In this document: positions 1-64,000 of the stretch, in pieces
Position numbering within the stretch: the stretch's first letter is position 1
Layout: every line of letters begins with the position of its first letter
Origin: Zancudomyces culisetae HAW-14-8
Taxonomy: Eukaryota; Fungi; Kickxellomycota
DNA: 64,000 bases
Reading direction: 5' to 3'
Assembly (NCBI GenBank): GCA_052426225.1
Contig: JBNJNM010000021.1
Span: forward strand, 1,364,001 to 1,428,000
Made by a program: the position numbers and the translations under genes
Notes under the pieces: model-generated
What the model saw: only the letters and a program-made list of their open reading frames with translations
The model's database searches: none
Told to the model about the DNA's origin: nothing

Positions 1-1
1 A

Positions 2-1228
2 ACAAGACCACCATGGCCAACAAGACCACCATGGCCAACAAGACCACCATGGCCAACAAGACCACCATGGCCAACAAGACCACCATGGCCAACAAGACCA
101 CCATGGCCAACAAGACCACCATGGCCAACAAGACCACCATGGCCAACAAGACCACCATGGCCAACAAGACCACCATGGCAAACAGGAACCGGCACAGAAC
201 CAACAGGAACCGGCACAGAACCAACAGGAACCGGCACAGAACCAACAGGAACCGGTACAGCACCAACAGGAACAGGCACAGCACCAACAGGTAGACCACC
301 TCGCCCACCTCGCCCACCATATCCTTGCCCACCATACTGGCCACACTGGCCACATCGCCCACCATACCCTCGACCACCATACTGGCCACACTGGCCACAT
401 CGCCCGCCATACCCTCGACCACCATATCCTCGCCCAACACACTGGCCACCATACCCTCGTCCAACACGAACCGGCACAGAACCAACAGGAACAGGCACAG
501 AACCAACAGGAACCGGTACAGCACCAACAGGTAGACCACCTCGCCCACCTCGCCCACCATACCCTCGACCACCATACCCTCGACCACCATACTGGCCACA
601 CTGGCCACATCGCCCACCATACCCTCGACCACCATACTGGCCACACTGGCCACATCGCCCGCCATACCCTCGACCACCATATCCTCGCCCAACACACTGG
701 CCACCATACCCTCGCCCAACAAGAACATGCACATCTGGAACAGGAACTGGTACAGAACCAACAGGAACAGAGCCAACAGGAACCAGTACAACAGAGGAAG
801 AGGGTACACCACCACCACCAACAATACCTGAGCCACCCCCATCGCACAGTAGCACACACCGTCCGCGCCCAACAAAAACCAGCACCATATGCACAACAGA
901 CGATGAGGGACCACCAATTATCATAACTATAACTTCTTCATCAACAATTAACACTACAGGTGAGATCGAATCGACTGAGCGGTCGACTACCACCACTACA
1001 AATACAGGCGAACCATGTGATAGTGAGGGGATTACCACAGTGATAATAAAAACCAAAACTAAAAGCAAAGTCAAGACAAAAACAAAGACCAAAACTAAGG
1101 TCATTGCCACCGATACTTGCGAAACCACGAGCACCAGCACCAGCACTAGCAGCTCCACTTCTACCCACTGTGGTCCAAGCACCAGCACACTAACTACATC
1201 AGATGAGTTGGGAGTAATGCCAGTATAG
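2..1228 (+). CDS. 3' part of Pro/Arg/Thr-rich repeat protein (paralog 1; 5' end outside window)
   Basis: Frame 2 is open from the window start to TAG at 1226-1228. It reads (TRPPWP)n, (TGTEPTG)n, RPPYWPHWPH repeats, then a C-terminus (TTDDEGPP...KTKTKSKVKTKTK...LGVMPV) nearly identical to 43181..47956. The 3' flank is also shared up to ~1394. Confidence 0.85.
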   Translation, partial: TRPPWPTRPPWPTRPPWPTRPPWPTRPPWPTRPPWPTRPPWPTRPPWPTRPPWPTRPPWQTGTGTEPTGTGTEPTGTGTEPTGTGTAPTGTGTAPTGRPPRPPRPPYPCPPYWPHWPHRPPYPRPPYWPHWPHRPPYPRPPYPRPTHWPPYPRPTRTGTEPTGTGTEPTGTGTAPTGRPPRPPRPPYPRPPYPRPPYWPHWPHRPPYPRPPYWPHWPHRPPYPRPPYPRPTHWPPYPRPTRTCTSGTGTGTEPTGTEPTGTSTTEEEGTPPPPTIPEPPPSHSSTHRPRPTKTSTICTTDDEGPPIIITITSSSTINTTGEIESTERSTTTTTNTGEPCDSEGITTVIIKTKTKSKVKTKTKTKTKVIATDTCETTSTSTSTSSSTSTHCGPSTSTLTTSDELGVMPV

Positions 1229-4453: not shown

Positions 4454-4862
4454 TGTCATGATTTATCATGCCATTTGTAATTAAATACACGTGTTGTATT
4501 TAATTACTAAATTGCTGCGCAATTTTGTCAAAAATCATTTTGGGAAATTTAATTTTGTTGATTGCGCAGTAGATTAAGTAATTTAGAAACGTGTTAAAAT
4601 TACGACATTTTGCTGCGCAATTACACGTTTTACATTACTAATCAATTGATTAGTAATCAATCTAGAATTCTAACACACTAGAATATTCTACACAGTTACA
4701 ACTATGTTTTTCATAGTTTTTTAGTAGTTTTGGAAAAGTATATATAGCCATAGATTTTATTGAAAGAGAACTTCAGCAATAAAATATCTTCACAAGATAT
4801 ATACTACTTTAAATAACTAAATAATATAAAATAAAATAATACTTAGTTGTCAGGTCCTGACA
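4454..4862 (+). repeat. G1 5' LTR
   Basis: tgtcatga...tcctgaca; homologous to 15854-16262 and, reversed, to 38962-39787. Confidence 0.93.
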
Positions 4863-20055: not shown

Positions 20056-21563
20056 CTCGCTCAATAATATCCAGAAATTAGATATATTGTATATTATATA
20101 ATGCACAATTGATATAATTTAATTTTATATATTATTTGAATTATTATTAATTAAATATTCATTATGTATTATAATATGAAAAATTTTATATAATGAGACA
20201 ATTTTGGAAATTTTTCAAAAAAAAAATTTAAACTATCATAACATTAGAATTCATATTTTAAATTTTTAAAATTTTTCATATTATAATATATATATTATTA
20301 TACTAATCAAAAGAATAATTTTTTAAAAAATATTATCTGATCAACGTAAACTGGATATAAAAAACGCGATACTTGAAGGCAGAAACATTGACCAAATCAT
20401 TATAGAAAATGGAGTTAGTAAAGCAACAATATACAGAATAAAAGCAGCAATGAATATCAATTTACCGGCTAATAAACGCGGTCGTCCTGCGAAGCTTTCA
20501 CTCCAAAGCAAGCGAATATGTACTAGGATGATATTATCTGGAATGTATCGAACTGCTACTTCGATACAAGAGAAGTTAGAAATGGATAATGTTGTAAGTG
20601 CTAGTAAGTCTACAATATATAGGGCTTTTAATGATCTAAAAGCCGTTGCAAAAAAAAAAACCTCCAAACCGAAACTGCGCCTTAAAAATAATGCAAAAAG
20701 GTTGAGATTCGCAAAATCTCATCGCCACTGGAATACTGATGATTGGAGGCGAGTAATTTGGTCCGACGAAACTAATATCAACCGATTTGGATCTGATGGA
20801 AATGAATGGAATTGGGTTCGTGATGGTGTGAGTCTACAGCCGCACAATATTAACCAGACCGTAAAACACGGTGGTGGATCATTAATGATTTGGGGATGCA
20901 TCACAGCATTTGGAACTGGCTACATGTGCCGAATAGAAGTCATGTTAAACAAGAAAGGTTATTTAAACATTCTAATAGACGAGCTTAGCAATACAATAAA
21001 GTACTACAAGTTGGATTCCAAGTCAATAATATTTCAACATGACAATTTTACTAAACATCCCTCAAAGTTAGTTACATGCTGGCTTCAAAACCAGAAATAT
21101 AATACATTGGACTGGCTGCCACAATCTCCATACGTAAACCCAATCGAAACTATATGGGCAATCATCAAAAGACGCATAAATAATTACAGTAAACTTCCGT
21201 CCGGGATGATCGCATTATGGGAGCGAATAGAATGGGAATGAAATCGAATTATAGTGGAATTAATAGTTGGACTTATAGATAGTATACCTAAAAGAATTGA
21301 ATTGTTTATTAAGTCTAAAAGCATGTAGACAAAATTTAAAAGTTTTATTTAAAAAAAATCAGAAATCTGTTTTAATGTTCTGAATATTTTATATATGAGA
21401 TTCTCAATGATTTCTAAACCAATAATTTTAATTTTATCATTTTAAAGTGCATCAAAAATACTATTAACAACATTTAATATTAAATCTAGGTATAATATTG
21501 GATGAATTATAATTATCTGAAATTATTTTATCAAACATAGTAACAGTTTTGAAACACACTGTA
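20056..21563 (+). mobile_element. Tc1/mariner DNA transposon, DD34E transposase pseudogene (~20330-21340)
   Basis: WSDET, QHDN and NPIE with 34 residues between the second D and E; VKHGGGSLMIWG; premature TGA at 21239. Right end ...acacactg|TA at 21561-21563; left TIR not recognisable. Confidence 0.9.
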
Positions 21564-28962: not shown

Positions 28963-31523
28963 AGATCAGAACACTAAGGTTTATCAAAACAACGAGAAGT
29001 CGTCAATGAACCCCAAGCAGTCTATCAGCCATTTGGGTATGGACATCAACACCCGCCAAATGAGCTTCAGGATTCCCAAGCAGAAACTCAGGGATCTCAC
29101 GCGAGAGGCATCCAAACTGATCAGGAATGGGAAGACGACGCTAAGCATCTCAGCGTCTTTCATTGGCAAGACACAGGCAGTGAACATCGCTCTCCGTCCA
29201 GGCAGACTCATGAGCAGGAGGCTTTTAGAGCTCAAGAATGCTACCCTGCGGACCACGCGGGATTGGAGCACAGAAGTACATTTGGATCAGCCAGCTCTAG
29301 ACAACCTGATCTGGTGGAGAGATCATCTGAAGGAATGGAACGGCCTGAGCTTCCTCCCAGAGATTCCGGAAGTGGAAGTCTACACAGACGCGAGCGACTT
29401 CCATTGGGGGATAGTTATTGGTCAGAGCCAGTACTCAGGAATATGGACCAAAGCACAGTCCAAGCTCCCGATCAACGCCAAGGAGCTACTAGCCATATAC
29501 AAGGCTATCAAGATGCCCCAGGTAAAGGGCAGGAGTGTGGTTGTATACTGCGACAACAACACCTCCATCAGCTACGTCAAGAAACAGGGTGGGACCAGAT
29601 CACCCAACCTGCTAGACATATCGGAACTGATGTGGAAACACTGCATCAGCAACGGGACCAGGGTACAGATCCAGTACGTACCATCCATGTGAATCCGGCA
29701 GACGCCCCATCCCGGCTTACTTTGCAGACCGAATGGTCGATATCGGAAAGAGTGTTTCAAAGGATTTAAAAATACTTTGGTCCTCACGATATCGACATGT
29801 TTGCGAGCAGCACCAATCACAAACTGAACACATTTGTGTGTTGGAAATACTGCCCCCAAGCAGTCAGGATCAACGCCTTCAACCACAGTTGGACAGTGTG
29901 GAAGAATCCATACTTGTGTCCACTGTGGAATCTGATCCAGCGTACCATCCAAAAGATCCGCCAGGAGAGGATCACAGCGACTCTGATCACGCTGTTCTGG
30001 AGATCAGCCCCGTGGTATCCGGACCTAAAGAGCCTGTCAATTGCACCGCCAATCAAGATTCATTCGTCAGCAGTTATCCCAGACCCGAGAAGCGGAAAAG
30101 CAGCGACAATGCGCAACAAGACATGGTCACTTACGGCTTGGCGGTTAAGCGCGCAAGGTATCAGGAAGCAGGATTAGATGAACAGGTCATCAATTTGATG
30201 CTCAACAACACTCGAGTTAAGACGAGGCAGAAGAAATACTTGAACCCGAAGACCAAGTTCCTACAGTGGCTTTCTACATCTTTAATCTCCATAGAAAACG
30301 TAACAGTCGTTGACGTTATCAACTATCTGGAGCAGCAGCGGAAGGCGCTAAACTGGAAACTTGGAACAGTCAAGAACTACAAGTCCGCCATTCTTGCCAT
30401 AACCAGTGATTGGGCTTCTTTCAGTGACGATCCACTAATAAAAATGTATCTCAAACAACTATCTTCATCAAACGTCAGTTCCTTTGACAATCCGCTTTAC
30501 GACATCAGTCCAATCATTGACCACATCAGGAAACTTGGGCCTAACTCCAGAATGTCAAAGTATGACTTGACAGCAAAACTATGCTGACTCATAGCCTTCT
30601 GTGGCTTTTTCAGGTGTTAGGAATGGCAATATATTCCAAAAAATGGATCTTTGTTGGAATCGATCCTAAAATGTTAGGAATGGCAAATTCCCGGAACATA
30701 AATTTTAGTTTACATTTTTGTTCTATAAAAAATTAAACTATTTTATTATTTCACTTACGACATTCAAATAAGCCATTCCGACATTGGAATCATGTATGCA
30801 AAATTCATCATGAAATCACAGTATTTATTATTGGGAAAATTGACAAAGAAAATTAAAGAAAATTTTCAATAATTAAATTTATAAAATTCATGTTAAAATC
30901 GATATACAAAATCATAGGCAAAATCGATATACAATATCGTAGGCAAAATCGATATACAAAATCATAGGCAAAATCGATATACAATATCGTAGGCAAAATA
31001 GATAACCAAAAACCATGATAAAATTGGATAACCAAAAACCATGATAAAATTCGATAAACATAATACATGTTAAAATTGGATAACCAAAAACCATGATAAA
31101 ATTCGATAAACAAAATACATGTTAAAATCGATAAACAAAATACATGTTAAAATCGATAAAGTAATCTCATGAATAAATCAAACAAGAAGTTTGATAAACT
31201 CAATTTTGATAGTTACTTTAAATTAGTTCATTTTTACATAGTAAAATTTTAAAACTAAAAAATTATTATCACTAAGTTTTTTCATAGCAAATTTCTCTGA
31301 TGAAAAAATATATAAACCCTTCGAAATTCCGTTGGGATACATCAGAGAAAAATATATGATTAACTCATCTAATAATATATTTTTCTAAATAACTACTTCT
31401 TCCTAATAAATAATAATACTGAATATTAATCACAGCATAGTTATAAGCAGCTCATTGATTATAACATCAGGCCAAGCGACATTGAGTGGATTGACGACAG
31501 CAAGACGTCGGTGACAAGAGAAC
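28963..31523 (+). mobile_element. DIRS-type retrotransposon copy 2 (fragment: RT end, RNase H, MTase-like, YR start)
   Basis: Clear protein similarity to copy 1. The YR reading FRPSDIEWIDDSK resumes at 31467 after an LTR insertion. Confidence 0.88.
30615..31466 (+). repeat. Solo LTR (family L7) with internal ~23-25-bp tandem repeats
   Basis: tgttagga...ttataaca; TSD TCAGG; start motif repeated at 30672; aaaatcgata-type repeats at ~30890-31165. Confidence 0.85.
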
Positions 31524-31623: not shown

Positions 31624-32779
31624 TGTTAGGAATGGCCAATTTGTTATGAATACACATGTTCAATATTTAATGTATCATCATTAAATTGTGTAATTAATGA
31701 TATTAGTTTATTTGTTTATTAATATTAGTTTTATTGATAGTTTTAGTTTATATTTGTTTTAGTACAAACTTAATTGTATAAAAAGTGATACTAATCTTTC
31801 ATAACAACTAAGTTTGTCAATCGCGTTTAACAATTATAAAAATAATATTAACTAAAATTATCTTATTACTGTGTGTTTTAAACTAGTACAATTAATAATA
31901 ACTTTTATAATTTAACTGTGGTTAATTAATTAATATCAATATTATTATGTATAATATTGGTATCTAACACAATTCCCCGAACATAATTTTTAGTTACATT
32001 TTGGCCTACTAAAAATCTAACCTATTTTATTATTTCATTTCCGGTTTTCTAATATGCCATACCGACATTGGAACCATGTTAGCAAAATTCACCATGTATT
32101 TCTGATTATATTATTGGGAAAATTTAAATAGAAAAAACAAGAAATTTTCCAATAATTATTTTTAACAAAAATCCTTGAAAAAATTGGATAAACCAAATCC
32201 ATGATAAAATTGATAATTAAAATCAATGCCAAAATTGATAAATAAAAACCAAGTAAAATCGATAAATAAAAACAATGATAAAATCGATAAACAAAAACCA
32301 TGATAAAATCGATAAACAATATCAACGCTAAAATCGATAAACAAAAACTATGCTAATACCAATGAACAAAATCAATGCTAATATCGATAAACAAAAACTA
32401 TGATAAAATCAATAAACAAAATCATTGTTAAAATTGATATACTAAATCAATGTTAAAATTGATAAACCATATCTATGTTAAAATCAACAAATGAAAATTA
32501 CAAGTTTCACGATAAGTAGATACCTAAAACTAGTTCAATTTTACATAGACAAATTTTATAGCTAAGATTTATTGACTTTAAGTTTTTCTTCACAGTAAAA
32601 TTCTCTGATGAAAAATTATATAAACCCTTCGAAAATATGTTGGTTACATCAGAGAAAAATACATATTTAATTCACATCTAACATTATATTTTTCTAAATA
32701 CCACTATTCTCAAATAAATATTAATCAAGCATAACTGAATCCACGGTCCACAGTTAATAGCAGCTCATTGTTTATAACA
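31624..32779 (+). repeat. Second L7-family LTR, containing a G3-related solo LTR (31642-31969)
   Basis: Similar to 30672-31466. The nested LTR is tgttatga...tatctaaca with TSD CAATT. Confidence 0.85.
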
Positions 32780-39787: not shown

Positions 39788-42700
39788 ATGATCTCAATAG
39801 CGACTGGATATCACTATCTAGAAGCTATTGGAACCACCAATTTAATAACAATACAACAAATTATGGTTCACTTTTAGCTACTGAATTGATGGAACTCCAT
39901 AATAGCATTAATAATATAAGAGATATCACATTTCAGTAATAAAGTTTATTGAAGTAGTGAATATCCTATTTAATGTGGATGTTAGGGACATTAATACAGT
40001 ACCTTATAGTTAAATTATTAATTGATGTATATTCTTTATTCAACCATTGGTTATTGGAAAAGAATAACTATCAAAGAAATCTAGACCTAAAAAAATAAGG
40101 ATATAATACTGAGTATGACTTTCTAATGTCATTATCACAAGTAAACAACGAGGCAAATACAACTGATGAACCAGTATACACTAGTACTGCCTTTGGAAAA
40201 GAGACACAATTCAGCATTAGTTTATACTGTCTTGAAAAAAATTTCCAACAGTTACCTCTGCCGAACCCGAAATACCTTTTGCCGGTATCGCTAATAAATC
40301 TTGGAAATGGAATCTCAGAAGAGTATGAATGAATAGAGAATTAAAAAGGTTTATTTATTTTAATTATAACAACACTGGGAAAATCCCCCAAACTATTACA
40401 AACTAGATATAGTATTATTGAACAGTAAAATATATAGTTGGAATAGTATTAATAGGTTAAAGATTGAAGAAAAAATTTAATCTCACCTTTATTTATCTTA
40501 CATGGGCAATTGTAATCGGGGAAAACAGTATCGAGTTGGACTGGATCGATAGAAAATTCGTTTTGTAAAAATCTGTAAAAAAAACGAAACCGAAACTATC
40601 AAACACGCCTACTTTGACTGTAGTAGAATTGTAATATAGTCATAGCTAGCCTATGACTGTGTTATTAATATTTTTGACATTATTTATCATAGTTTATAAT
40701 TTGAGAAAAGAAAGAAAAAAACTCAAAAAAATTGAGATAAATTGGAAAAAACAAGTAAATGAAAAAGAATTAGGTATTTAATAGATTTTCGAATCTTCTA
40801 TCTAGGAGAATTAAGTTTTTTTTTATCCTTTAGTTCTATAGTAAATAAAGCTATTATATACCTAAATATTATAAGGGACACGGTACTTTAGACAAACAAG
40901 AGGTAAAACTCAGTCACTAAGTATCGGAAAATTGAGTAGAGTTTATATATTTGCTATAGTTATATTACAGAATCAAGTGTTTTTGGAATAAAGTTTTTTC
41001 CTTTTTAATTTCCAATCTAAAAAAAAACATTCATTGGACAATCACACCTTGAAAAAAATTTGGAAAATTGAAAAAATCGACTTCAATTGGGAAGAAATTA
41101 TGTCTGGATGCAACAAAATTAGGCACTGTATTAAAGACATAAAAATTATTTTAGCATCAGCCATCTGGAATAATTCAGAGCGAGAACTGAGGCTGCACTA
41201 TCAGAAAAAACTACAAAGCATTTCAACTATTCTTGAAATGGAAAGAATACATGCGGATGTATTACAAAGTATACAACAAAAACAATGATGAGGAGAAAAA
41301 CCTGTTTGAATTTGAACCTGATTAACCAAAAAAAATGTCACCAACATTTTATAAATCTCCTATCAATTTACAATTTTTTCAACAATTGTCCATCAACATC
41401 TCAAACACAAAAAAAAATAATAATAATAACTTCAGATTCTTGAAACGAATTTTCCATCTACCCAGAATAACTCAACTATTTCCAGGATACACTCCCTATG
41501 AACAGTTTATTCATTTAGTTACACTTACTTAACTAGTATTTCTTTTAATTTGATTTATTTTGTTCAGGACACTAATAAACTCTATCTAAAAATAATAATA
41601 AAATTTTACTCAATTTATTAGCATAAAATTAGCGAATCAATTTCTAGAATAGAATTTGGTGATTATTTTCGAAATGAAATGATGGCAAATACACACATCA
41701 AGCGTTTTTTCCGATGATGTACAATTTTAGTTTACGCATATCGATGTTTTAAGGGATAAAGTCAAAATTTTCCTCTCTTTTTCCGTCCTAGAAGTATATG
41801 ACGTCGAAAGGTTATTTTTATATTGGTCTGACTATATAAAATAAAGGATTTCTAAAATATTGGCAAAAACAGGATTGAGTTATTTAGTGTTTGGATTAAA
41901 CAACAAATATTACCAATATGGAGAGTATTAATTGCTCAAATAATATGTATTGTAATTTTAATAAATAGGATCGAGGCCAAAGACCTGGACAAGAAAGTAT
42001 ATTGTAAAATTTTTCTTGGCTAGTTGTTCACCTAGTTTTGATAAATATTGGCATGCTAAGTGTGTATTAAAAGTGGGTCCAGTCATTTTGAAAATTTTAA
42101 ACAACAAAGATCCATATATTCTGCTGCAATAAAATTAATCTAGATTTTTCAAAGTTTGAAACCCTGTATTTTATTACAACAATATTATACACATGCTTGA
42201 ATAAATTGATATACAAATCTAGACTATAGACACTATAAAGTGATATCTACATAAGTAAAGCAATTTTTGGCTAATAAGAGGGTAACTACTTTTATTTTCA
42301 ACCACAAATACCCTTTATTTCGTTATTCAAACCAATAGAGATGTGAAAAAAAGAAGAATTCTACGACAGCAATTCTGAAAAGCAAACATTGGAGGTCTTC
42401 TTACACGAGTAGGTGTGCAATAGTAATTTATTTTCCCCTAGGGGATACCAGTTTAATTGCAAATATTTTTCTACAATGACAATATTATCACCTGTACCCA
42501 GTCAGTCAAATATTAACAACATTGTTAGCCTAGGCAAAGTGATTTTGACTATTGGAGTATGAGACTCACGAGCATGTAAGACCGAATGTAGTTTCTGGAT
42601 TTATTGGAGCAAATTTCAAATAAAGTAGTATCGAATTTTTCTCGAAGAGAGGTGGAGAGGGGGAAGGTTGAAAATATACTAGATTTGTACCTAGATGTGT

Positions 42701-43180
42701 TTTTTTATATTGTTGCGAATTTAGAAAAGGCTGTGTTAATGGTGGACATTATTTTATCTTCAGGTATTGAAGGTCTTTATTATAGCAATAATTATACACC
42801 ATGGCCTAAGCTTATGAGATAGATTCGGCATTTCAAATTTATATAAATAATAAGTTTAATACCACATAGCTTTACCAAAAAACTTTAGTATTTAACCAGA
42901 AGAGTATTCAATAACATATAGACGCATTTTTCAACAGAATCGCTAGCATATTACATACTTCGTAAAACTTTGTTTATTGTAAATGTATAGTTATTGGAAT
43001 TGAGACATTGTAAAATCCATCCCTAATTCAAAAAAAAGGAACGGAAAAGACACATTTACACCAATACACATTAAATAACAAGGATAATAATTTACAACAA
43101 TAACTCCGTCCTGATATAGATATAATAAAATCTAATATTATCGTGTAGCTCAGGTTAGAATAAGCATCAACCGAGTAATA

Positions 43181-46100
43181 ATGCAATTTAAGATGATAAA
43201 TCTAAGATGCTTGTCCCTACTTGCGCTTTACGCCCTCTCAGTGTATACTTATGCGGAGAGCCCCCATAGTACAGGAGTGACAAAGGATACACCAAAATTT
43301 TTAGACAAAGGTATAACCAAAGAACTCAAATATGTGCAAAAAAAAGATTTAGAAAATGGGATAATTTCGAAAAGCATCAGCAGCGAGGGTAATGGCCTCG
43401 TTCAGAAGAATGGTATACCATATAAGATGTGTAGACGGGGAGGAGGAGGAGGATGTAGAGGAGGAGGAGCTAGAAGAGGAGGATGTAGAGGAGGAGGAGC
43501 TAGAAGAGGAGGATGTAGAGGAGGAGCTAGAAGAGAATGTAGGCCAAGCTGTAGACCACCACATAGACCATTCTGTAAACTACCACATAGACCATTCTGT
43601 AAACTACCACATAGACCATTCTGTAAACCACCACATAGACCATTCTGTAAACCACCACATAGACCATTCTGTAAACCACCATGCAAACCACACAGACCAC
43701 ACCCACCGTTTACTAGACCAACAAGACCATGTCCACCATTCACTCGTCCAACAAGGCCACGCCCAACATTCACTCGCCCACCATTTACTAGACCAACAAG
43801 ACCATGTCCACCATTCACTCGTCCAACAAGGCCACGCCCAACATTCACTCGCCCACCATTTACTAGACCAACAAGACCATGTCCACCATTCACTCGCCCA
43901 ACAAGGCCACGCCCAACATTCACTCGCCCACCATTCACTCGCCCACCATTCACTCGTCCAACAAGACCATGTCCACCATTCACACGACCACCATTCACCA
44001 GACCAACATTCACTCGCCCACCATTCACTCACCCACCATTTACTAGACCAACAAGACCATGTCCACCATTCACTCGCCCAACAAGGCCACGCCCAACATT
44101 CACTCGCCCACCATTCACTCGCCCACCATTCACTCGCCCACCATTCACTCGTCCAACAAGACCATGTCCACCATTCACACGACCACCATTCACTCGTCCA
44201 ACATTCACTCGCCCAACATTCACTCGACCACCATTCACTCGCCCACCATTCACACGACCACCATTCACTCGCCCACCATTCACACGACCACCATTCACTC
44301 GCCCACCATTTACTAGACCAACAAGACCATGTCCACCATTCACACGACCAACATTCACTCGCCCAACATTCACTCGCCCAACATTCACTCGCCCACCATT
44401 CACTCGCCCACCATTCACTCGCCCACCATTCACTCGCCCACCATTCACACGACCACCATTCACCAGACCACCATTCACTCGCCCACCATTCACTCGCCCA
44501 CCATTCACACGACCACCATTCACACGACCACCATTTACTCGCCCACCATTCACTCGCCCACCATTCACTCGCCCACCATTCACTCGCCCACCATTCACTC
44601 GCCCACCATTCACTTGCCCACCATTCACTCGCCCACCATTCACCAGACCAACCCGTACTCGCCCAACTTCATTTACTCGCCCACCATTCACTCGCCCACC
44701 ATTCACTCGCCCACCATTCACTCGCCCACCATTCACTCGCCCACCATTCACTTGCCCACCATTCACTCGCCCACCATTTACTCGCCCACCATTCACTCGC
44801 CCACCATTCACTCGCCCACCATTCACTCGACCACCATTCACTCGCCCACCATTCACTCGCCCACCATTCACACGACCACCATTCACTCGCCCACCATTCA
44901 CACGACCACCATTCACCAGACCAACCCGTACTCGCCCAACTTCATTCACTCGCCCAACTTCATTCACTCGCCCAACTTCATTCACTCGCCCAACTTCATT
45001 CACTCGCCCAACATTCACTCGCCCACCATTCACTCGCCCACCATTCACTCGCCCACCATTCACTCGCCCACCATTCACTCGCCCACCATTCACTCGCCCA
45101 CCATTCACTCGCCCACCATTCACTCGCCCACCATTCACTCGCCCACCATTCACTCGCCCACCATTCACTCGCCCACCATTCACTCGCCCACCATTCACAC
45201 GACCACCATTCACCAGACCAACCCGTACTCGCCCAACTTCATTCACTCGCCCAACTTCATTCACTCGCCCAACATTCACTCGCCCACCATTCACTCGCCC
45301 ACCATTCACTCGCCCACCATTCACTCGCCCACCATTCACACGACCACCATTCACACGACCACCATTTACTCGCCCACCATTCACTCGCCCACCATTCACT
45401 CGCCCACCATTCACTCGCCCACCATTCACTCGCCCACCATTCACTTGCCCACCATTCACTCGCCCACCATTCACCAGACCAACCCGTACTCGCCCAACTT
45501 CATTCACTCGCCCACCATTCACTCGACCACCATTCACTCGCCCACCATTCACTCGCCCACCATTCACTCGCCCACCATTCACACGACCACCATTCACCAG
45601 ACCACCATTCACTCGCCCACCATTCACTCGCCCACCATTCACACGACCACCATTCACTCGCCCACCATTCACTCGCCCACCATTCACTCGCCCACCATTC
45701 ACTCGCCCACCATTCACTCGCCCACCATTCACTCGCCCACCATTCACTCGCCCACCATTCACTCGCCCACCATTCACTCGCCCACCATTCACACGACCAA
45801 CAAGACCATGTCCACCATTCACTCGCCCACCATTCACACGACCACCATTCACACGACCAACAAGACCATGTCCACCATTCACTCGCCCACCATTCACACG
45901 ACCACCATTTACTAGACCAACAAGACCATGTCCACCATTCACTCGCCCAACTTCATTCACTCGCCCAACATTCACTCGCCCACCATTCACTCGCCCACCA
46001 TTCACTCGCCCACCATTCACTCGCCCACCATTCACTCGCCCACCATTCACTCGCCCACCATTCACTCGCCCACCATTCACTCGCCCACCATTCACTCGCC

Positions 46101-47956
46101 CACCATTCACTCGCCCACCATTCACACGACCAACAAGACCATGTCCACCATTCACTCGCCCACCATTCACACGACCACCATTTACTAGACCAACAAGACC
46201 ATGTCCACCATTCACTCGCCCACCATTCACACGACCACCATTCACCAGACCAACAAGACCATGTCCACCATTCACTCGCCCACCATTCACACGACCACCA
46301 TTTACTAGACCAACAAGACCATGTCCACCATTCACTCGCCCACCATTCACCAGACCAACCCGTACTCGCCCAACTTCATTCACTCGCCCAACTTCATTCA
46401 CTCGCCCAACTTCATTCACTCGCCCAACATTCACACGACCACCATTCACCAGACCAACCCGTACTCGCCCAACTTCATTCACTCGCCCAACTTCATTCAC
46501 TCGCCCAACATTCACTCGCCCACCATTCACTCGCCCACCATTCACTCGCCCACCATTCACTCGCCCACCATTCACTCGCCCACCATTCACTCGCCCACCA
46601 TTCACTCGCCCACCATTCACACGACCACCATTTACTAGACCAACAAGACCATGTCCACCATTCACTCGCCCACCATTCACACGACCACCATTCACCAGAC
46701 CACCATTCACTCGCCCACCATTCACTCGCCCACCATTCACTTGCCCACCATTCACTCGCCCACCATTCACCAGACCAACCCGTACTCGCCCACCATTCAC
46801 CAGACCAACCCGTACTCGCCCAACTTCATTCACTCGCCCAACTTCATTCACTCGCCCACCATTCACTCGCCCACCATTCACTCGCCCACCATTCACTCGC
46901 CCACCATTCACTCGCCCACCATTCACTCGCCCACCATTCACTCGCCCACCATTCACTCGCCCACCATTCACTCGCCCACCATTCACTCGCCCACCATTCA
47001 CACGACCACCATTTACTAGACCAACAAGACCATGTCCACCATTCACACGACCAACATTCACTCGCTCAACATTCACTCGCCCAACATTCACTTGTCCAAC
47101 ATTCACTTGTCCAACAAGACCAACAAGACCACGTCCACCATACTGGCCACACTGGCCACATCGCCCACCATACCCTCGACCACCATATTGGCCATACTGG
47201 CCACACCAACCAACATATTCTCGACCACCATACTTGCCACACCGACCACCATATCATCGTCCAACAAGACCACGCCCACCATTCACTCGTCCACCATTCA
47301 CACGCCCACCGTTTACAAGACCAACAAAACCACGTCCAACATTCACTCGTCCAACAAGACCAACAAGACCACGTCCACCATACTGGCCACACTGGTCACA
47401 TCGCCCACCATACCCTCGACCACCATACTGGCCACACTGGCCCCATCGCCCACCATATCACCGCCCAACACACTGGCCACCATACCCTCGCCCAACAAAA
47501 ACACGCACATCTGGAACAGGAACTGGTACAGAACCAACAGGAACAGAGCTAACAGGAACCAGTACAACAGAGGAACAAAGCACACCACCACTACTAACAA
47601 TCCCTGAGTCACCTCCATCACACAGTAGAACACACCGTCCGCGCCCAACAAAAACCAGCACCATATGCACAACAGACGATGAGGGTCCACCAATTAACAT
47701 AACTATATCTTCTTCATCAACAATCAACACTACAGGTGAGATCGAATCGACTGAACGGTCGACTACCACCACTACAAATACAGGCGAACCATGTGATAGT
47801 GAGGGGATTACCACAGTGATAATAAAAACCAAAACTAAAAGCAAAGTCAAGACAAAAACAAAGACCAAAACTAAGGTCATCGCCACCGATACTTGCGAAA
47901 CCACGAGCACCAGCACACTAACTACATCAGATGCGTTGGGAGTAATGCCAATATAG
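43181..47956 (+). CDS. Giant secreted Pro/Arg/Thr/Phe tandem-repeat protein (paralog 2, 1591 aa)
   Basis: Signal-peptide-like N-terminus; G/R/C block, (PPHRPFCK)n, a >1100-aa (PPFTR)n array, PPYWPHW block, S/T tail. Repeat variation is mostly synonymous in this frame. Confidence 0.88.
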   Translation: MQFKMINLRCLSLLALYALSVYTYAESPHSTGVTKDTPKFLDKGITKELKYVQKKDLENGIISKSISSEGNGLVQKNGIPYKMCRRGGGGGCRGGGARRGGCRGGGARRGGCRGGARRECRPSCRPPHRPFCKLPHRPFCKLPHRPFCKPPHRPFCKPPHRPFCKPPCKPHRPHPPFTRPTRPCPPFTRPTRPRPTFTRPPFTRPTRPCPPFTRPTRPRPTFTRPPFTRPTRPCPPFTRPTRPRPTFTRPPFTRPPFTRPTRPCPPFTRPPFTRPTFTRPPFTHPPFTRPTRPCPPFTRPTRPRPTFTRPPFTRPPFTRPPFTRPTRPCPPFTRPPFTRPTFTRPTFTRPPFTRPPFTRPPFTRPPFTRPPFTRPPFTRPTRPCPPFTRPTFTRPTFTRPTFTRPPFTRPPFTRPPFTRPPFTRPPFTRPPFTRPPFTRPPFTRPPFTRPPFTRPPFTRPPFTRPPFTRPPFTRPPFTCPPFTRPPFTRPTRTRPTSFTRPPFTRPPFTRPPFTRPPFTRPPFTCPPFTRPPFTRPPFTRPPFTRPPFTRPPFTRPPFTRPPFTRPPFTRPPFTRPPFTRPTRTRPTSFTRPTSFTRPTSFTRPTSFTRPTFTRPPFTRPPFTRPPFTRPPFTRPPFTRPPFTRPPFTRPPFTRPPFTRPPFTRPPFTRPPFTRPPFTRPTRTRPTSFTRPTSFTRPTFTRPPFTRPPFTRPPFTRPPFTRPPFTRPPFTRPPFTRPPFTRPPFTRPPFTRPPFTCPPFTRPPFTRPTRTRPTSFTRPPFTRPPFTRPPFTRPPFTRPPFTRPPFTRPPFTRPPFTRPPFTRPPFTRPPFTRPPFTRPPFTRPPFTRPPFTRPPFTRPPFTRPPFTRPPFTRPTRPCPPFTRPPFTRPPFTRPTRPCPPFTRPPFTRPPFTRPTRPCPPFTRPTSFTRPTFTRPPFTRPPFTRPPFTRPPFTRPPFTRPPFTRPPFTRPPFTRPPFTRPPFTRPTRPCPPFTRPPFTRPPFTRPTRPCPPFTRPPFTRPPFTRPTRPCPPFTRPPFTRPPFTRPTRPCPPFTRPPFTRPTRTRPTSFTRPTSFTRPTSFTRPTFTRPPFTRPTRTRPTSFTRPTSFTRPTFTRPPFTRPPFTRPPFTRPPFTRPPFTRPPFTRPPFTRPPFTRPTRPCPPFTRPPFTRPPFTRPPFTRPPFTRPPFTCPPFTRPPFTRPTRTRPPFTRPTRTRPTSFTRPTSFTRPPFTRPPFTRPPFTRPPFTRPPFTRPPFTRPPFTRPPFTRPPFTRPPFTRPPFTRPTRPCPPFTRPTFTRSTFTRPTFTCPTFTCPTRPTRPRPPYWPHWPHRPPYPRPPYWPYWPHQPTYSRPPYLPHRPPYHRPTRPRPPFTRPPFTRPPFTRPTKPRPTFTRPTRPTRPRPPYWPHWSHRPPYPRPPYWPHWPHRPPYHRPTHWPPYPRPTKTRTSGTGTGTEPTGTELTGTSTTEEQSTPPLLTIPESPPSHSRTHRPRPTKTSTICTTDDEGPPINITISSSSTINTTGEIESTERSTTTTTNTGEPCDSEGITTVIIKTKTKSKVKTKTKTKTKVIATDTCETTSTSTLTTSDALGVMPI

Positions 47957-48401
47957 TACAGCTATAACTATATTTCACTACTTTTTTTAATTTTTTTTTC
48001 TTGAAGGCAAACACCTTTTAACACCTTTAGATTTATTTATTATTGAGCTTACCAAATAAAGCATAAACTAATATTTACAATATAAAAAAAGTAATATGAA
48101 CACGTGATTTGTTTAAATTGTAAAAGGTGCTACAGAAGGTTATGCTGGAGCAAATGTTGAGACTTCTTGTATTTCGTTCTGTATATATGTATTTTTTTTT
48201 TAATTTTTGAAATTTAGTGTTTTAATTTCGTGAAATTTGTGCAAAATTGATGTAAATATTATGTTTATTTGATTAATTTTTTTTTTTAGAATAGTTAATA
48301 TTTTTTTAGTAGTGAATATATAATATAATTTTTTATAGAGCAAGCTTTTTAACAAAAAAGAAAAATAAAAAAGGAACGGGAAAAAAGAAGGGAAGACAAC
48401 A

Positions 48402-58331: not shown

Positions 58332-61300
58332 TCAAAGATAAGGTGGTATGTCAGAAGGATACAATTCAGCATCATTCATATAATCATCATGTAGTGGTCC
58401 GTGTGGTGATTTTGATGATGAACAAGGAAGTGTTGAATGAGAAGTATTTGATAAGGTTGGGGATGTAGAAAATGATGACAATGTAGATGTTTTAGAAGTA
58501 GATGCAAATGATGGAGTTGAAAAACAAGTGTGAGATGTTGGTGATGTTAGAAAAGTTGATGTGGTAGAAGTTGTTGAAAATGTTGGAGAGGAATGGTATT
58601 TAGTGCTTGTGGATGATACACAGGTATGTGTTTTTGAGTGGGGTTGAGTAGGAGTTGACGGACGGGAAGTTCGGGATGATGTATAGTGTGGTGGTCTATG
58701 ATGTGGGCGGTGAGGTGGTCGGTATGGCGGTCTATGATGTGGGCGGTGAGGTGGTCGGTATGGCGGTCTATGATGTGGGCGGTGAGGTGGTCGGTATGGC
58801 GGTCTATGATGCGGACGATGGTGTGGACGATGATGTGGTCGGTATGGCGGTCTATGATGCGGACGATGGTGTGGACGATGATGTGGTCGGTATGGCGGTC
58901 TATGATGCGGACGATGGTGTGGTTTGTATGGTGGACGGTATGGCGGTCTGTGATGTGGACGGTGAGGTGGTCGATGTGGTGGACCACATGGTGAGGGATG
59001 GGGTGGTCTATGTGACGGTCTATGTGTTGGACGGGTAAATGTTAAACTAGTTATTGAAGTTAGAATACATGGTGATGTGGGTCTAGTACGTGATGAACTA
59101 GCTACTGAAGTTAGAATAGTTGATGGAGTTGGGCAAGTTACTGAAATGGGTCTGGTACGGGTTGGGCGAGTACGGGTTGGACTAGTTACTGAGGTTGGGC
59201 TAGTTGGTGAAGTTGGGCAAGTTACTGAAGTGGGTCTGGTACGGGTTGGGCGAGTTGGTGAGGTTGAGCGAGTACGAGTTGGGCGAGTGAATGAAGTTGG
59301 GCGAGTGAATGAAGTTGGGCGAGTGAATGAAGTTGGGCGAGTGAATGAAGTTGGGCGAGTGAATGAAGTTGGGCGAGTGAATGAAGTTGGCCTGGTGAAT
59401 GAAGTTGGTCTGGTGAAGGACGTTGGGCGAGTGAATGAAGTTGGGCGAGTGAATGAAGTTGGTCTGGTGAATGAAGTTGGGCGAGTGAATGAAGTTGGGC
59501 GAGTACGAGTTGGACTGGTGAATGAAGTTGGTCTGGTGAAGGACGTTGGGCGAGTACGAGTTGGTCTGGTGAATGAAGTTGGTCTGGTGAAGGACGTTGG
59601 GCGAGTACGAGTTGGGCGAGTGAATGAAGTTGGACGAGTACGAGTTGGTCTGGTGAAGGACGTTGGGCGAGTACGGGTTGGCCTGGTGAATGAAGTTGGT
59701 CTGGTGAAGGACGTTGGGCGAGTGAATGAAGTTGGGCGAGTGAATGAAGTTGGGCGAGTGAATGAAGTTGGTCTGGTGAATGAAGTTGGGCGAGTGAATG
59801 AAGTTGGGCGAGTGAATGAAGTTGGGCGAGTACGAGTTGGACTGGTGAATGAAGTTGGTCTGGTGAATGAAGTTGGTCTGGTGAAGGACGTTGGGCGAGT
59901 ACGAGTTGGTCTGGTGAAGGACGTTGGGCGAGTACGGGTTGGCCTGGTGAATGAAGTTGGTCTGGTGAATGAAGTTGGTCTGGTGAATGAAGTTGGTCTG
60001 GTGAAGGATGTTGGTCTGGTGAATGAAGTTGGTCTGGTGAAGGACGTTGGGCGAGTGAATGAAGTTGGGCGAGTGAATGAAGTTGGGTGAGTACGGGTTG
60101 GCCTGGTGAATGAAGTTGGTCTGGTGAATGAAGTTGGTCTGGTGAAGGATGTTGGTCTGGTGAATGAAGTTGGTCTGGTGAAGGACGTTGGGCGAGTGAA
60201 TGAAGTTGGTCTGGTGAATGAAGTTGGGCGAGTGAATGAAGTTGGGCGAGTGAATGAAGTTGGGCGAGTACGAGTTGGACTGGTGAATGAAGTTGGTCTG
60301 GTGAATGAAGTTGGTCTGGTGAAGGACGTTGGGCGAGTACGAGTTGGTCTGGTGAATGAAGTTGGTCTGGTGAAGGACGTTGGGCGAGTGAATGAAGTTG
60401 GTCTGGTGAAGGATGTTGGTCTGGTGAATGAAGTTGGTCTGGTGAAGGACGTTGGGCGAGTGAATGAAGTTGGGCGAGTGAATGAAGTTGGTCTGGTGAA
60501 GGATGTTGGTCTGGTGAAGGACGTTGGGCGAGTACGAGTTGGTCTGGTGAATGAAGTTGGTCTGGTGAAGGACGTTGGGCGAGTGAATGAAGTTGAGCGA
60601 GTGAATGAAGTTGGTCTGGTGAATGAAGTTGGGCGAGTGAATGAAGTTGGGCGAGTACGAGTTGGACTGGTGAATGAAGTTGGTCTGGTGAATGAAGTTG
60701 GTCTGGTGAAGGACGTTGGGCGAGTACGAGTTGGTCTGGTGAATGAAGTTGGTCTGGTGAAGGACGTTGGGCGAGTGAATGAAGTTGGGCGAGTGAATGA
60801 AGTTGGTCTGGTGAAGGATGTTGGTCTGGTGAATGAAGTTGGGCGAGTGAATGAAGTTGGGCGAGTACGAGTTGGACTGGTGAATGAAGTTGGTCTGGTG
60901 AATGAAGTTGGTCTGGTGAAGGACGTTGGGCGAGTACGAGTTGGTCTGGTGAATGAAGTTGGGCGAGTACGAGTTGGTCTGGTGAATGAAGTTGGTCTGG
61001 TGAAGGACGTTGGGCGAGTACGAGTTGGGCGAGTGAATGAAGTTGGACGAGTACGAGTTGGTCTGGTGAAGGACGTTGGGCGAGTACGGGTTGGCCTGGT
61101 GAATGAAGTTGGTCTGGTGAATGAAGTTGGTCTGGTGAATGATGTTGGACGAGTACGTGTTGGGCGAGTGAATGATGTTGGGCGAGTGAACGTTGGGCGA
61201 GTGAACGTTGGACGAGTGAATGATGTTGGGCGAGTACGTGTTGGGCGAGTGAATGATGTTGGTCTGGTGAATGAAGTTGGTCTGGTGAATGAAGTTGGTC

Positions 61301-64000
61301 TGGTGAATGATGTTGGACGAGTACGTGTTGGGCGAGTGAATGATGTTGGGCGAGTGAACGTTGGGCGAGTGAACGTTGGACGAGTGAATGAAGTTGGGCG
61401 AGTACGTGTTGGACGGGTGAATGATGTTGGGCGAGTACGTGTTGGGCGAGTGAATGATGTTGGACGAGTGAATGAAGTTGGGCGAGTACGGGTTGGGCGA
61501 GTACGTGTTGGGCGAGTGAATGATGTTGGGCGAGTGAATGATGTTGGGCGAGTGAATGTTGGACGGGTGAATGATGTTGGGCGAGTACGTGTTGGGCGAG
61601 TGAACGTTGGGCGAGTGAATGAAGTTGGTCTGGTGAATGAAGTTGGTCTGGTGAAGGACGTTGGGCGAGTACGAGTTGGTCTGGTGAATGAAGTTGGTCT
61701 GGTGAAGGACGTTGGGCGAGTGAATGAAGTTGGTCTGGTGAAGGATGTTGGTCTGGTGAATGAAGTTGGTCTGGTGAAGGACGTTGGGCGAGTGAATGAA
61801 GTTGGGCGAGTGAATGAAGTTGGTCTGGTGAAGGATGTTGGTCTGGTGAAGGACGTTGGGCGAGTACGAGTTGGTCTGGTGAATGAAGTTGGTCTGGTGA
61901 AGGACGTTGGGCGAGTGAATGAAGTTGAGCGAGTGAATGAAGTTGGTCTGGTGAATGAAGTTGGGCGAGTGAATGAAGTTGGGCGAGTACGAGTTGGACT
62001 GGTGAATGAAGTTGGTCTGGTGAATGAAGTTGGTCTGGTGAAGGACGTTGGGCGAGTACGAGTTGGTCTGGTGAATGAAGTTGGTCTGGTGAAGGACGTT
62101 GGGCGAGTGAATGAAGTTGGGCGAGTGAATGAAGTTGGTCTGGTGAAGGATGTTGGGCGAGTGAATGAAGTTGGGCGAGTGAATGAAGTTGGGCGAGTAC
62201 GAGTTGGACTGGTGAATGAAGTTGGTCTGGTGAATGAAGTTGGTCTGGTGAAGGACGTTGGGCGAGTACGAGTTGGTCTGGTGAATGAAGTTGGGCGAGT
62301 ACGAGTTGGTCTGGTGAATGAAGTTGGTCTGGTGAAGGACGTTGGGCGAGTACGAGTTGGGCGAGTGAATGAAGTTGGACGAGTACGAGTTGGTCTGGTG
62401 AAGGACGTTGGGCGAGTACGGGTTGGCCTGGTGAATGAAGTTGGTCTGGTGAAGGACGTTGGGCGAGTGAATGAAGTTGGGCGAGTGAATGAAGTTGGTC
62501 TGGTGAAGGATGTTGGTCTGGTGAAGGACGTTGGGCGAGTACGAGTTGGTCTGGTGAATGAAGTTGGTCTGGTGAAGGACGTTGGGCGAGTGAATGAAGT
62601 TGGGCGAGTGAATGAAGTTGGGCGAGTACGAGTTGGTCTGGTGAATGAAGTTGGGCGAGTACGAGTTGGTCTGGTGAATGAAGTTGGTCTGGTGAAGGAC
62701 GTTGGGCGAGTGAATGAAGTTGGTCTGGTGAAGGACGTTGGGCGAGTGAATGAAGTTGGGCGAGTGAATGAAGTTGGTCTGGTGAAGGATGTTGGTCTGG
62801 TGAAGGACGTTGGGCGAGTACGAGTTGGTCTGGTGAATGAAGTTGGTCTGGTGAAGGACGTTGGGCGAGTGAATGAAGTTGAGCGAGTGAATGAAGTTGG
62901 TCTGGTGAATGAAGTTGGTCTGGTGAATGATGTTGGACGAGTACGTGTTGGTCTGGTGAATGAAGTTGGTCTGGTGAAGGATGTTGGTCTGGTGAATGAA
63001 GTTGGTCTGGTGAAGGACGTTGGGCGAGTGAATGATGTTGGGCGAGTACGTGTTGGCCTGGTAAATGTTGGTCTGGTGAATGTTGGTCTGGTGAATGATG
63101 TTGGACGAGTACGTGTTGGGCGAGTGAACGTTGGTCTAGTGAATGAAGTTGGTCTGGTGAATGATGTTGGACGAGTACGTGTTGGACGAGTGAATGTTGG
63201 ACGGGTGAATGATGTTGGGCAAGTACGTGTTGGTCTAGTGAATGATGTTGGTCTGGTGAATGATGTTGGGCGAGTAAATGTTGGACGGGTGAATGATGTT
63301 GGGCGAGTACGTGTTGGGCGAGTACGTGTTGGGCGAGTACGTGTTGGGCGAGTACGTGTTGGGCGAGTACGTGTTGGGCGAGTACGTGTTGGGCGAGTGA
63401 ATGATGTTGGGCGAGTGAACGTTGGGCGAGTGAATGATGTTGGGCGAGTACGTGTTGGGCGAGTGAACGTTGGTCTGGTGAATGAAGTTGGGCGAGTACG
63501 AGTTGGGCGAGTGAATGATGTTGGGCGAGTGAATGAAGTTGGACGAGTGAATGTTGGTCTAGTACGTGTAGGTCTAGTACGTGTTGGGCGAGTGAACGTT
63601 GGTCTAGTGAATGATGTTGGTCTGGTGAATGATGTTGGACGAGTACGTGTTGGACGAGTGAATGTTGGACGGGTGAATGATGTTGGGCAAGTACGTGTTG
63701 GTCTAGTGAATGATGTTGGTCTGGTGAATGATGTTGGGCGAGTAAATGTTGGACGGGTGAATGATGTTGGGCGAGTACGTGTTGGGCGAGTGAACGTTGG
63801 TCTGGTGAAGGACGTTGGGCGAGTACGTGTTGGGCGAGTGAATGATGTTGGTCTGGTGAATGAAGTTGGTCTGGTGAATGAAGTTGGTCTGGTGAAGGAC
63901 GTTGGGCGAGTACGTGTTGGGCGAGTGAATGATGTTGGTCTGGTGAATGAAGTTGGTCTGGTGAATGAAGTTGGTCTGGTGAATGATGTTGGACGAGTAC
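58332..64000 (-). CDS. Giant (FTRPTS)n repeat protein (relative 3; 5' end outside window)
   Basis: One minus-strand frame appears open from the window end to TGA at 58334-58332 (checked codon by codon over the 3' part, phase-checked elsewhere). It reads FTRPTS/TRPTR arrays, then ([12 protein letters not shown])n, an S/T tail, and ends [13 protein letters not shown]. Confidence 0.85.

Follow-up and report, generated by a model that had tools for sequence, protein, structure and literature searches.

We identified three genes for giant, predicted secreted repeat proteins of some 1400–3300 aa (1409, 1591 and 3278 aa), all inside ∼72 kb of contig 21 of the Zancudomyces culisetae genome. Past the secretion signal, about 95% of the protein consists of short Pro-rich repeats. 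The analysis covered a window of 64,000 nt (contig 21, positions 1364001–1428000) in an assembly of 27.09 Mb and 25 contigs; the published HiFi assembly of this fungus has 26 contigs (two mitochondrial), 27.2 Mb and 35.56% GC (PMC12611240). By sequence comparison, the family consists of two true paralogs, paralogs 1 and 2, and of a neighbor, relative 3, whose modules follow the same order and whose repeat units are shared or have been exchanged. What is new here is an unusual Arg/Phe chemistry in a fungus, while extracellular proline-rich repeat polymers are as such a known kind. The three genes are concrete and testable candidates for matrix or adhesive material in a fungus that colonizes larvae of disease-vector mosquitoes.

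Organization of the repeat genes

Paralog 2 corresponds to the giant open reading frame (ORF) with PPFTR units that was reported in a preliminary description of this DNA. It is intact from its ATG, occupies positions 43181–47956 (+) and encodes 1591 aa. The ORF is composed of the following consecutive parts (window coordinates, strand, description):

43181..43255 (+) start codon and signal peptide, aa 1–25; basic n-region, hydrophobic core and a cleavage-type site between TYA and E
43256..43429 (+) unique hydrophilic head, aa 26–83 (58 aa); 0 stops in frame versus 5 and 8 in the other sense frames
43430..43570 (+) Gly/Arg/Cys block, aa 84–130; G 36%, R 30%, C 13%; GGGARRGGCR twice
43571..43696 (+) Cys-bearing Pro/His/Arg/Phe/Lys repeats, aa 131–172; PHRPFCK[LP], 8 aa, 5.5 copies of a 24-nt unit
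43697..47128 (+) main array, aa 173–1316 (1144 aa); 226 units of 9, 15, 18 or 21 nt
47129..47500 (+) His/Tyr/Trp-Pro-Arg block, aa 1317–1440; PPYWPHWPHR and PPYPR with a short PPFTR island; common to paralog 1
47501..47956 (+) Ser/Thr-rich tail, aa 1441–1591; mildly acidic, with 3 Cys and a KT-alternating stretch

The signal peptide is MQFKMINLRCLSLLALYALSVYTYA, ending in VYTYA and followed by ESPH; a second Met at aa 5 lines up with the start of paralog 1. The earlier observation of a signal peptide and a Cys/Gly/Arg-rich block thus refers to aa 1–25 and aa 84–130, respectively. The main array resolves fully into its 226 units, which include PPFTR (139 units), PTR (22), PCPPFTR (16), PTSFTR (16), PTFTR (12), PTRTR (8) and a few variants. 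Tandem Repeats Finder (TRF) reports a 15-nt unit in 221.8 copies at 43733–47107. Cys residues are regularly spaced in the N-proximal repeats and sparse along the array (one per ∼20–100 aa). A distinct His/Tyr/Trp-Pro block lies near the C-terminus; Tyr is confined to this block, whereas the main arrays use Phe. The tail terminates with LGVMPI and the stop codon TAG.

The other two genes extend beyond the edges of the window:

1..1228 (+) 3' part of paralog 1; TRPPWP and TGTGTEP/TGTGTAP units, PPYWPHWPHR/PPYPR block, Ser/Thr tail, stop codon at 1226–1228
58332..64000 (−) 3' 5.7 kb of relative 3; FTRPTS array, PHHR/PPYR (PHHRPPYR) block, Ser/Thr tail, stop codon at 58332–58334

Paralog 1 encodes 1409 aa, starts 3002 nt ahead of the window, and has the same signal peptide, head and tail as paralog 2. 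Its middle part comprises CRRVCRP-type Cys/Arg repeats, a block of ∼400 aa with PPYRPR, PHRPHK and PHRPIIR, ∼24 PPFTR units, and then the TRPPWP and TGTGTEP/TGTGTAP units. Relative 3 encodes 3278 aa and reaches 4168 nt past the window end. It has a signal peptide of its own (MHVNIKSILLLILASISANA, followed by QE), a head of ∼140 aa, PPPHR/PPPHKPAPCK repeats, further repeats, an array of ∼2100 aa, the PHHR/PPYR block and the Ser/Thr tail. Both genes had been anticipated from their window parts. Paralog 1, previously placed at 2–1228 with TRPPWP and TGT-type units, does show TRPPWP and TGTGTEP and a tail nearly identical to that of paralog 2. Relative 3, previously described as an inverted gene with FTRPTS units, reads on the minus strand from 64000 to 58335 through these units, the PHHRPPYR block and the Ser/Thr tail.

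Duplication and array turnover

Paralogs 1 and 2 are similar on both sides of their arrays. Their head coding sequences are 97.3% identical and their tails are 91% identical as protein, with a conserved position of the stop codon. Similarity continues into the flanks:

41724..43178 (+) upstream region common to paralogs 1 and 2, the promoter side of the duplication; 1448 aligned nt, 92.7% identical
47957..48066 (+) 3' flank of paralog 2; 110 nt up to a stretch that contains AATAAA, 97% identical to paralog 1

The flank homology fades after approximately +160 past the stop, which marks the 3' limit of the duplicated unit. These alignments identify the two genes as a recent segmental duplication of a whole gene unit including its promoter. 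On the other hand, no exact word common to the two arrays exceeds 19 nt. Since duplicates with near-identical flanks share no longer array word, the comparison indicates that the repeat content turned over much faster than the flanks. The locus is thus a clean example of very fast array turnover, with flanks that are 93–97% identical and arrays that are largely different.

The first 110 nt past the stop codon (47957–48066 versus 1229–1338) are, at 97% identity, more similar between the paralogs than the synonymous sites of the tail (proportion of synonymous differences, pS, 0.078) and the upstream region (92.7%). This suggests either a constrained 3' untranslated region or a recent conversion tract.

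The relationship of relative 3 to this pair is of another kind. Neither its unique head nor its unique tail shows similarity to the corresponding parts of paralogs 1 and 2, while its array includes units with DNA identical to that of paralog 2: CCAACTTCATTCACTCGC occurs 15 times in paralog 2 and 54 times in relative 3, and CCAACCCGTACTCGC occurs 8 times in each. Exact words common to these two genes reach 83 nt. The preliminary view of three related genes is therefore accurate for paralogs 1 and 2, which are true recent duplicates, but does not extend to the unique ends of relative 3. Likewise, its 'interchangeable repeat units' are better described as rapid array turnover in recent duplicates together with identical unit DNA in neighboring arrays.

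Coding potential and selection

All six frames are open across the arrays, and the length of the ORFs is for this reason no argument for a gene. The same fact favors a non-functional origin, by which the loci would be expanded CCA-rich minisatellites (open MINISATELLITES) that stay open by chance, or young duplicates already decaying. This alternative can further point to a retrotransposon nest adjoining the array and to the failure of any homologs to turn up.

To separate the frames, a frame-blind test was used, in which the number of distinct peptides is divided by the number of distinct DNA words, for words of 15, 18 or 30 nt that are seen at least twice. In the proposed frame the ratio is 0.42–0.44 for paralog 2 and 0.23–0.25 for relative 3, versus 0.88–1.0 in the other sense frames. 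The antisense frames give 0.92–0.97, except for the frame that shares the wobble positions (0.52 in paralog 2 and 0.40 in relative 3). This partial collapse of DNA variants in one antisense frame is in line with a non-functional array, but the strongest synonymous collapse of the six frames belongs to the sense frame. For instance, PTSFTR of relative 3 is encoded by at least six DNA versions, including AGA and CGC for Arg. Repeat-unit variation in the proposed frame is mostly synonymous, which therefore argues for selection on the peptide.

Three further features disagree with chance openness. The lengths of all units are multiples of three (9, 15, 18 and 21 nt), and no frameshifts occur in 3.4 kb (paralog 2) or 9.8 kb (relative 3) of diverged repeats. 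The AT-rich unique head and tail contain no stops in frame, compared with 5–11 in each other sense frame. Finally, an ATG, a signal peptide and the same module order are found at three loci, a fourth, unlinked locus has a (PTR)n array after its signal peptide, and the duplicated unit of paralogs 1 and 2 spans from the promoter region to the AATAAA-bearing 3' flank. We thus regard a non-functional origin as improbable and, on these sequence features, classify the three loci as genuine coding sequences under selection, as opposed to open minisatellites.

A comparison of the two duplicates points the same way, on small counts. The proportion of nonsynonymous differences (pN) between paralogs 1 and 2 is lower than pS (0.033 vs 0.078 in the tail, 0.007 vs 0.052 in the mature head), but these values are derived from very few substitutions. 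Furthermore, in young duplicates the conservation of unique parts is weak evidence. An RNA run that shares 4% of words has matches solely on the GGAGGA stretch at 43434–43515, to unrelated contigs, and so speaks neither for nor against expression.

The open frames across the paralog 2 array also generate stop-free repeat by-products that could be mis-called as genes, in antisense at 43402–47106 (−) and off frame at 43392–47552 (+). The overlying ORFs include a GGRVN-type one of 1025 aa and an HHSLA-type one of 1386 aa.

Composition, secretion and fold

The main array of paralog 2 consists of P 36%, T 24%, R 20% and F 17%, with Tyr outside the ten commonest residues. Its 1144 aa include 231 Arg, no Lys and no Asp or Glu; the absence of acidic residues, noted before for the array, in fact holds for a longer stretch of 1331 aa (aa 120–1450). 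The corresponding acid-free stretches are 760 aa in paralog 1 and 3127 aa in relative 3, and the array of relative 3 likewise has no Lys versus 448 Arg. The net charges of paralog 1, paralog 2 and relative 3 are +229, +281 and +626. Whole-protein Pro content is 28.5, 30.7 and 22.7% in the same order, Thr content ranges over 20–28%, one Arg occurs per 5–6 residues, and nearly every unit has an aromatic residue. Most Arg residues directly precede Pro, as is the case for 221 of 230 in the array of paralog 2 and for 359 of 447 in relative 3. This acid-free, Lys-free chemistry, which extends over thousands of residues with Arg, Pro, Thr and Phe at strict short intervals, is unusual for a fungal surface protein and of interest for bioadhesives and coacervates.

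All three proteins carry N-terminal signal-type sequences. In single-sequence AlphaFold2 models, which are weak evidence, the sole confident element of the paralog 2 head is the signal helix at aa 8–25 (mean predicted local distance difference test score, pLDDT, 49.8), and the tail is of low confidence with no fold (mean pLDDT ∼50 for both ends). Pfam finds nothing above threshold in the head and tail, and thus no folded N-terminal ligand-binding domain.

Searches for relatives and family assignment

Word searches with aa 1–100 of paralog 2 (against proteins of 875–2784 aa), with the head of relative 3 (156-aa query) and with the tail of paralog 2 (151-aa query) retrieved no relative. Neither did an exhaustive HMMER search of 1.84 billion protein representatives with aa 1–85 of paralog 2, nor a metagenome pattern scan. 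The single HMMER match (P0001) is a bacterial seven-fold repeat surface protein with 32 aa aligned per repeat, and we judged it to be due to chance. In the ESM Atlas, whole paralog 2 and a 200-aa piece of its array gave nothing at or above 0.9. An exact-protein look-up had no match; the query protein may be missing from the libraries because the new annotation is deposited outside NCBI. The literature on trichospore and holdfast composition and on fungal extensin-like proteins offered nothing usable. The genes appear from these searches to be lineage-restricted, without detectable relatives elsewhere. As a point against this assignment, the result may partly reflect poor recovery of such genes in short-read, masked Harpellales assemblies.

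A named family is suggested only by Pfam. Extensin_1 (PF02095) scores 518.8 bits on whole paralog 2, versus a cutoff of 105, which at face value would make these proteins members of the plant and algal extensins (hydroxyproline-rich glycoproteins, HRGPs), acquired for example by horizontal transfer. HRGPs are defined by prolyl 4-hydroxylation and Hyp-arabinosylation, and the genome also holds genes for PF13640 2OG-Fe(II) oxygenases, a kind that includes prolyl hydroxylases, although the domain is not specific to them. However, the score is the sum over 10 low-density stretches. A 200-aa piece of paralog 2 scores 100.4 bits and falls under the cutoff, the PPFTR part of paralog 1 scores 62.7, the PTHRPPPFTR part of relative 3 scores 35.9, and its FTRPTS array gives nothing. 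The score thus behaves as additive with the length of the PP-x-T (xPPxT) pattern and probably reflects a pattern match, not family membership. The sequence motifs of extensins point the same way. The Ser-Pro3-5 motif is lacking (no SPPP in any of the three proteins; SPP 0, 1 and 1 times), the Tyr cross-link motif YxY occurs 1, 1 and 0 times and is not spread along the repeats, the pentamer PP.[YF]K of proline-rich protein (PRP) type has no occurrences, and the non-repeat regions match nothing. True extensin membership is accordingly very improbable, and the automatic Pfam label 'extensin-like' for paralog 2 is misleading.

The preliminary description had recognized no named family and had pointed to the non-repeat N-terminus and the C-terminal tail as queries. 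These regions have no match to any characterized family; the absence of a name stands as far as homology searches are concerned, with the qualification that Extensin_1 exceeds its cutoff on the repeat pattern.

Other proline–threonine repeat proteins of the genome

Four loci outside contig 21 encode secreted proteins that resemble those of the window in having a signal peptide followed by long P-T-x repeats in CCA ACN codons:

contig 13, 1882983–1887932 (+) ORF of 1650 aa; signal peptide, unique ∼290-aa head, then ∼200 PTR units with PTGPTG and VSPSSTTRTR among them
contig 11, 2762702–2764234 (+) 511-aa secreted (PTD)n polyanion; D+E 21%, net charge −83, CCA-ACN codon scheme
contig 12, 1126023–1133198 (+) 2392-aa secreted protein with (PTSPTG)n tracts and a trypsin-family domain at its start
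contig 6, 44365–47124 (−) secreted (PTSPTG)n protein ending with SLGIMPLQFM

The unique ends of all four are unrelated to those of the window genes. The (PTR)n protein of contig 13 has a net charge of +284, a Cys-rich C-terminus and a ratio of 0.27 in the coding test; it has no Pfam domain. It is built of the PTR unit, which is the 'TRP core' of the window genes. The earlier claim that a TRP core is common to the three genes stands, but this class of proteins is wider than the window. The end of the contig 6 protein is reminiscent of LGVMP[IV] at the C-termini of paralogs 1 and 2, with no DNA homology in this part.

None of these four proteins has the Phe-bearing units of the contig 21 genes; across the whole genome, such units are restricted to the three ORFs of contig 21. 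Judged by their repeats, the contig 21 genes represent the Arg-plus-aromatic extreme among the secreted P-T-x repeat proteins of this genome.

Possible function

The composition of the proteins and their analogy to known polymers suggest, as the most likely role, that of an extracellular structural or adhesive matrix protein, such as a wall coat, holdfast cement or spore-appendage material, which we consider an evenly balanced proposition. Under this role, the protein would leave the cell as a long, extended, stiff polyproline-II-like rod without a globular domain, because its signal peptide and short unstructured head are followed almost solely by Pro-rich short repeats. Many of its Thr residues are probably O-mannosylated, judging by composition. 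Charge and hydrogen bonding could attach the guanidinium groups of Arg to anionic surfaces or polymers, the aromatic residues Phe, Tyr and Trp could provide cation-π and hydrophobic cohesion, and the periodic Cys (through disulfides) and the C-terminal His/Tyr/Trp block might form covalent or metal- or pH-dependent cross-links.

Such a role would most likely represent functional convergence, without homology, on the proline-rich wall proteins of plants and on fp-1, a coating protein of mussels. Like the proteins described here, plant PRPs (Pro-Pro-Val-Tyr-Lys) and extensins are secreted and strongly basic, lack a globular domain and are built almost solely of short Pro-rich units in tandem. 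The PRP pentamer has the same pattern as PPFTR, namely Pro-Pro, a residue that is hydrophobic or aromatic, one that is hydroxy or aromatic, and a basic one. The differences are the lack of homology beyond the repeat pattern, the use of Arg and never Lys, Phe in place of Tyr, and the fungal host. Mussel Mfp-1 (AKPSYPPTYK) shares a very long array of a short Pro/Thr/aromatic/basic unit, a high pI and an extended shape, which is a prediction for the proteins here; cohesion through cation-aromatic contacts is proposed for mussel-type polycationic bioadhesives. It differs in using Lys and Tyr (the latter converted to DOPA), whereas here the main arrays use Arg and Phe, with Tyr, Trp and His restricted to the short block near the C-terminus. 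The two are unrelated in sequence, and the resemblance is one of architecture and charge only.

Among fungal proteins, the wall proteins and adhesins of the Als, Flo, Hwp1 and Pir types are similar in being secreted, in having long hydroxy-rich repeats that are likely O-mannosylated, and in a rapid change of repeat number between paralogs. Unlike them, the proteins here have no folded N-terminal domain, no GPI signal of the Als/Flo/Epa/Hwp type and no Pir motif, and they are extremely basic and dominated by Pro, Arg and Phe, whereas those fungal proteins are acidic or neutral.

Several observations speak against a role in the wall or in adhesion. None of the three proteins has a hydrophobic C-terminus of the GPI type, and a wall-anchoring signal is absent: they end with SDALGVMPI, SDELGVMPV and YPSDIPPYL, and their last 20 aa have mean hydropathies of 0.34, 0.05 and −0.71. 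By direct reading, the Pir repeat Q[IV]xDGQ[IVP]Q is also absent, as none of the three sequences contains DGQ. Since wall proteins of fungi are as a rule acidic and rich in Ser/Thr, the wall analogy is one without homology. As the arrays contain Phe and not Tyr, curing of the DOPA or dityrosine type would be possible only in the short C-terminal block. The proposed glycosylation, cation-π contacts and cross-linking are drawn from composition and from the analogy with plant PRPs and mussel fp-1.

With regard to the C-termini, a GPI signal encoded by a hidden exon after LGVMP[IV] was considered and rejected: the likely downstream acceptors, inspected by eye, would add 4–11 residues and no long hydrophobic tail. 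The contig 6 gene end LGIMPLQFM was likewise dismissed as a clue to such an exon, as it has no DNA homology in that region.

Two other functions were weighed against a matrix or adhesive role. First, the proteins could act in antibacterial or polyanion-neutralizing defense in the manner of proline-rich antimicrobial peptides (PrAMPs), either whole or after cleavage by gut proteases into short Pro/Arg peptides, which would penetrate gut bacteria, with DnaK or the ribosome as the blocked target, or would simply coat and agglutinate bacteria. The habitat is a bacteria-rich gut, and the proteins are Arg-rich and show two of the three defining properties of PrAMPs (PMC7736402), a Pro content of at least 25% (in paralogs 1 and 2, with relative 3 below this value at 22.7%) and a net cationic charge; the third property is antimicrobial action on a target inside the bacterial cell, DnaK or the 70S ribosome. 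Paralog 1 contains 49 PRP motifs and ∼27 PPYR(PR) units that resemble the YRPRP of metalnikowin and astacidin 2, and Bac5 and PR-39 likewise alternate PP, Phe and Arg (PMC7736402). However, known PrAMPs are animal peptides of 15–60 aa with defined processing, whereas the proteins here are fungal and have 1409–3278 aa. Since the definition sets no length limit (PMC7736402), size counts against the resemblance and not against the formal definition. No regular dibasic or spacer sites separate the array units: paralog 2 has no KR, and its four RR all lie in the Gly/Arg block. Trypsin leaves Arg-Pro bonds intact, and the pentapeptides that chymotrypsin would release by cutting after Phe are too short. 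The main unit PPFTR is also poor in PRP motifs (12 in whole paralog 2), and the 20–28% Thr points to heavy glycosylation, which is a better fit to a matrix protein. We consider a PrAMP-like function unlikely.

Second, the proteins may form a protective coat that is not adhesive. The thallus surface would then bear a brush of glycoproteins similar to mucins or salivary PRPs, which withstands the proteases of the gut and takes up dietary tannins, humic acids or other polyanions but contributes neither to attachment nor to the mechanics of the wall. An established class of basic proline-rich proteins binds polyphenols. A coat would agree with the extended Pro/Thr repeats and the protease-resistant Arg-Pro bonds, as well as with the wide use of Pro-Thr repeats as spacers in secreted proteins of this genome, for example in the trypsin-domain protein with (PTGPTS)n and the (PTSPTG)n protein. 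Conversely, with periodic Cys, a dedicated His/Tyr/Trp block and an extreme density of charge, the proteins look more like cohesive material that can be cross-linked than like a passive brush, and there is no membrane or wall anchor to hold a brush. On this evidence a protective coat is a minor possibility.

Two features of the proteins would also suit the insect gut. The larval mosquito midgut is very alkaline (pH 10–11), and Arg-Pro bonds are not cut by trypsin. Trypsin-resistant bonds and the charge of Arg at very alkaline pH might therefore be of advantage in this habitat; the exclusive use of Arg would keep the charge at midgut pH, despite an AT-rich genome in which mutation favors Lys codons. 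Because Arg-Pro bonds remain uncut, trypsin-based proteomics would be nearly blind to these proteins. Z. culisetae lives attached to the hindgut (PMC12611240), on its cuticle, its spores are reported to give off a glue under certain pH conditions while they pass through the gut of the host, and the only adhesion factor proposed so far is a fasciclin-domain protein (PMC5954228).

A more specific and rather doubtful version of the adhesive role can be formulated from the coexistence of (PTR)n and (PTD)n proteins in the genome, which makes a complex-coacervate glue conceivable with the (PTD)n protein as a possible counter-ion partner. The Arg-only polycations, that is, the products of the three contig 21 genes and the (PTR)n protein of contig 13, would then be Harpellales holdfast cement or spore glue, a gut-adapted coacervate adhesive. 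They would keep their full charge at pH 10–11 in the mosquito midgut by using Arg and never Lys, and would survive trypsin as nearly every Arg precedes Pro. Their anionic partner in condensation would be the secreted (PTD)n protein of contig 11 or polyanions of the wall or cuticle, and they would set through their Cys and His/Tyr/Trp blocks once the pH drops in the hindgut. If true, underwater adhesion would here rely on a new protein chemistry, and the attachment of these fungi would for the first time be explained at the molecular level.

Other features of the window

The neighbors of the repeat genes in the window include Ty3/gypsy-type and other retroelement ORFs, a PRP6-like TPR/HAT gene and a CCT chaperonin gene. 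The ORF at 2753–4459 (−) encodes reverse transcriptase and RNase H and has a weak, below-cutoff similarity to N6-adenine methyltransferase (Dam). Its layout recalls DIRS-type elements, unlike the Ty3/gypsy copies that fill 5–38 kb of the window. The ORF at 20450–21241 (+) has weak, near-cutoff matches to a Tc3-type helix-turn-helix domain and to the DDE_3 transposase, and looks like a Tc1/mariner-like DNA transposon remnant within the retrotransposon nest. A (TTCAGG) microsatellite of 40.7 copies is located at 12931–13174, and a 25-nt AT-rich repeat forms two arrays ∼1 kb apart, at 30884–31160 and 32168–32485.

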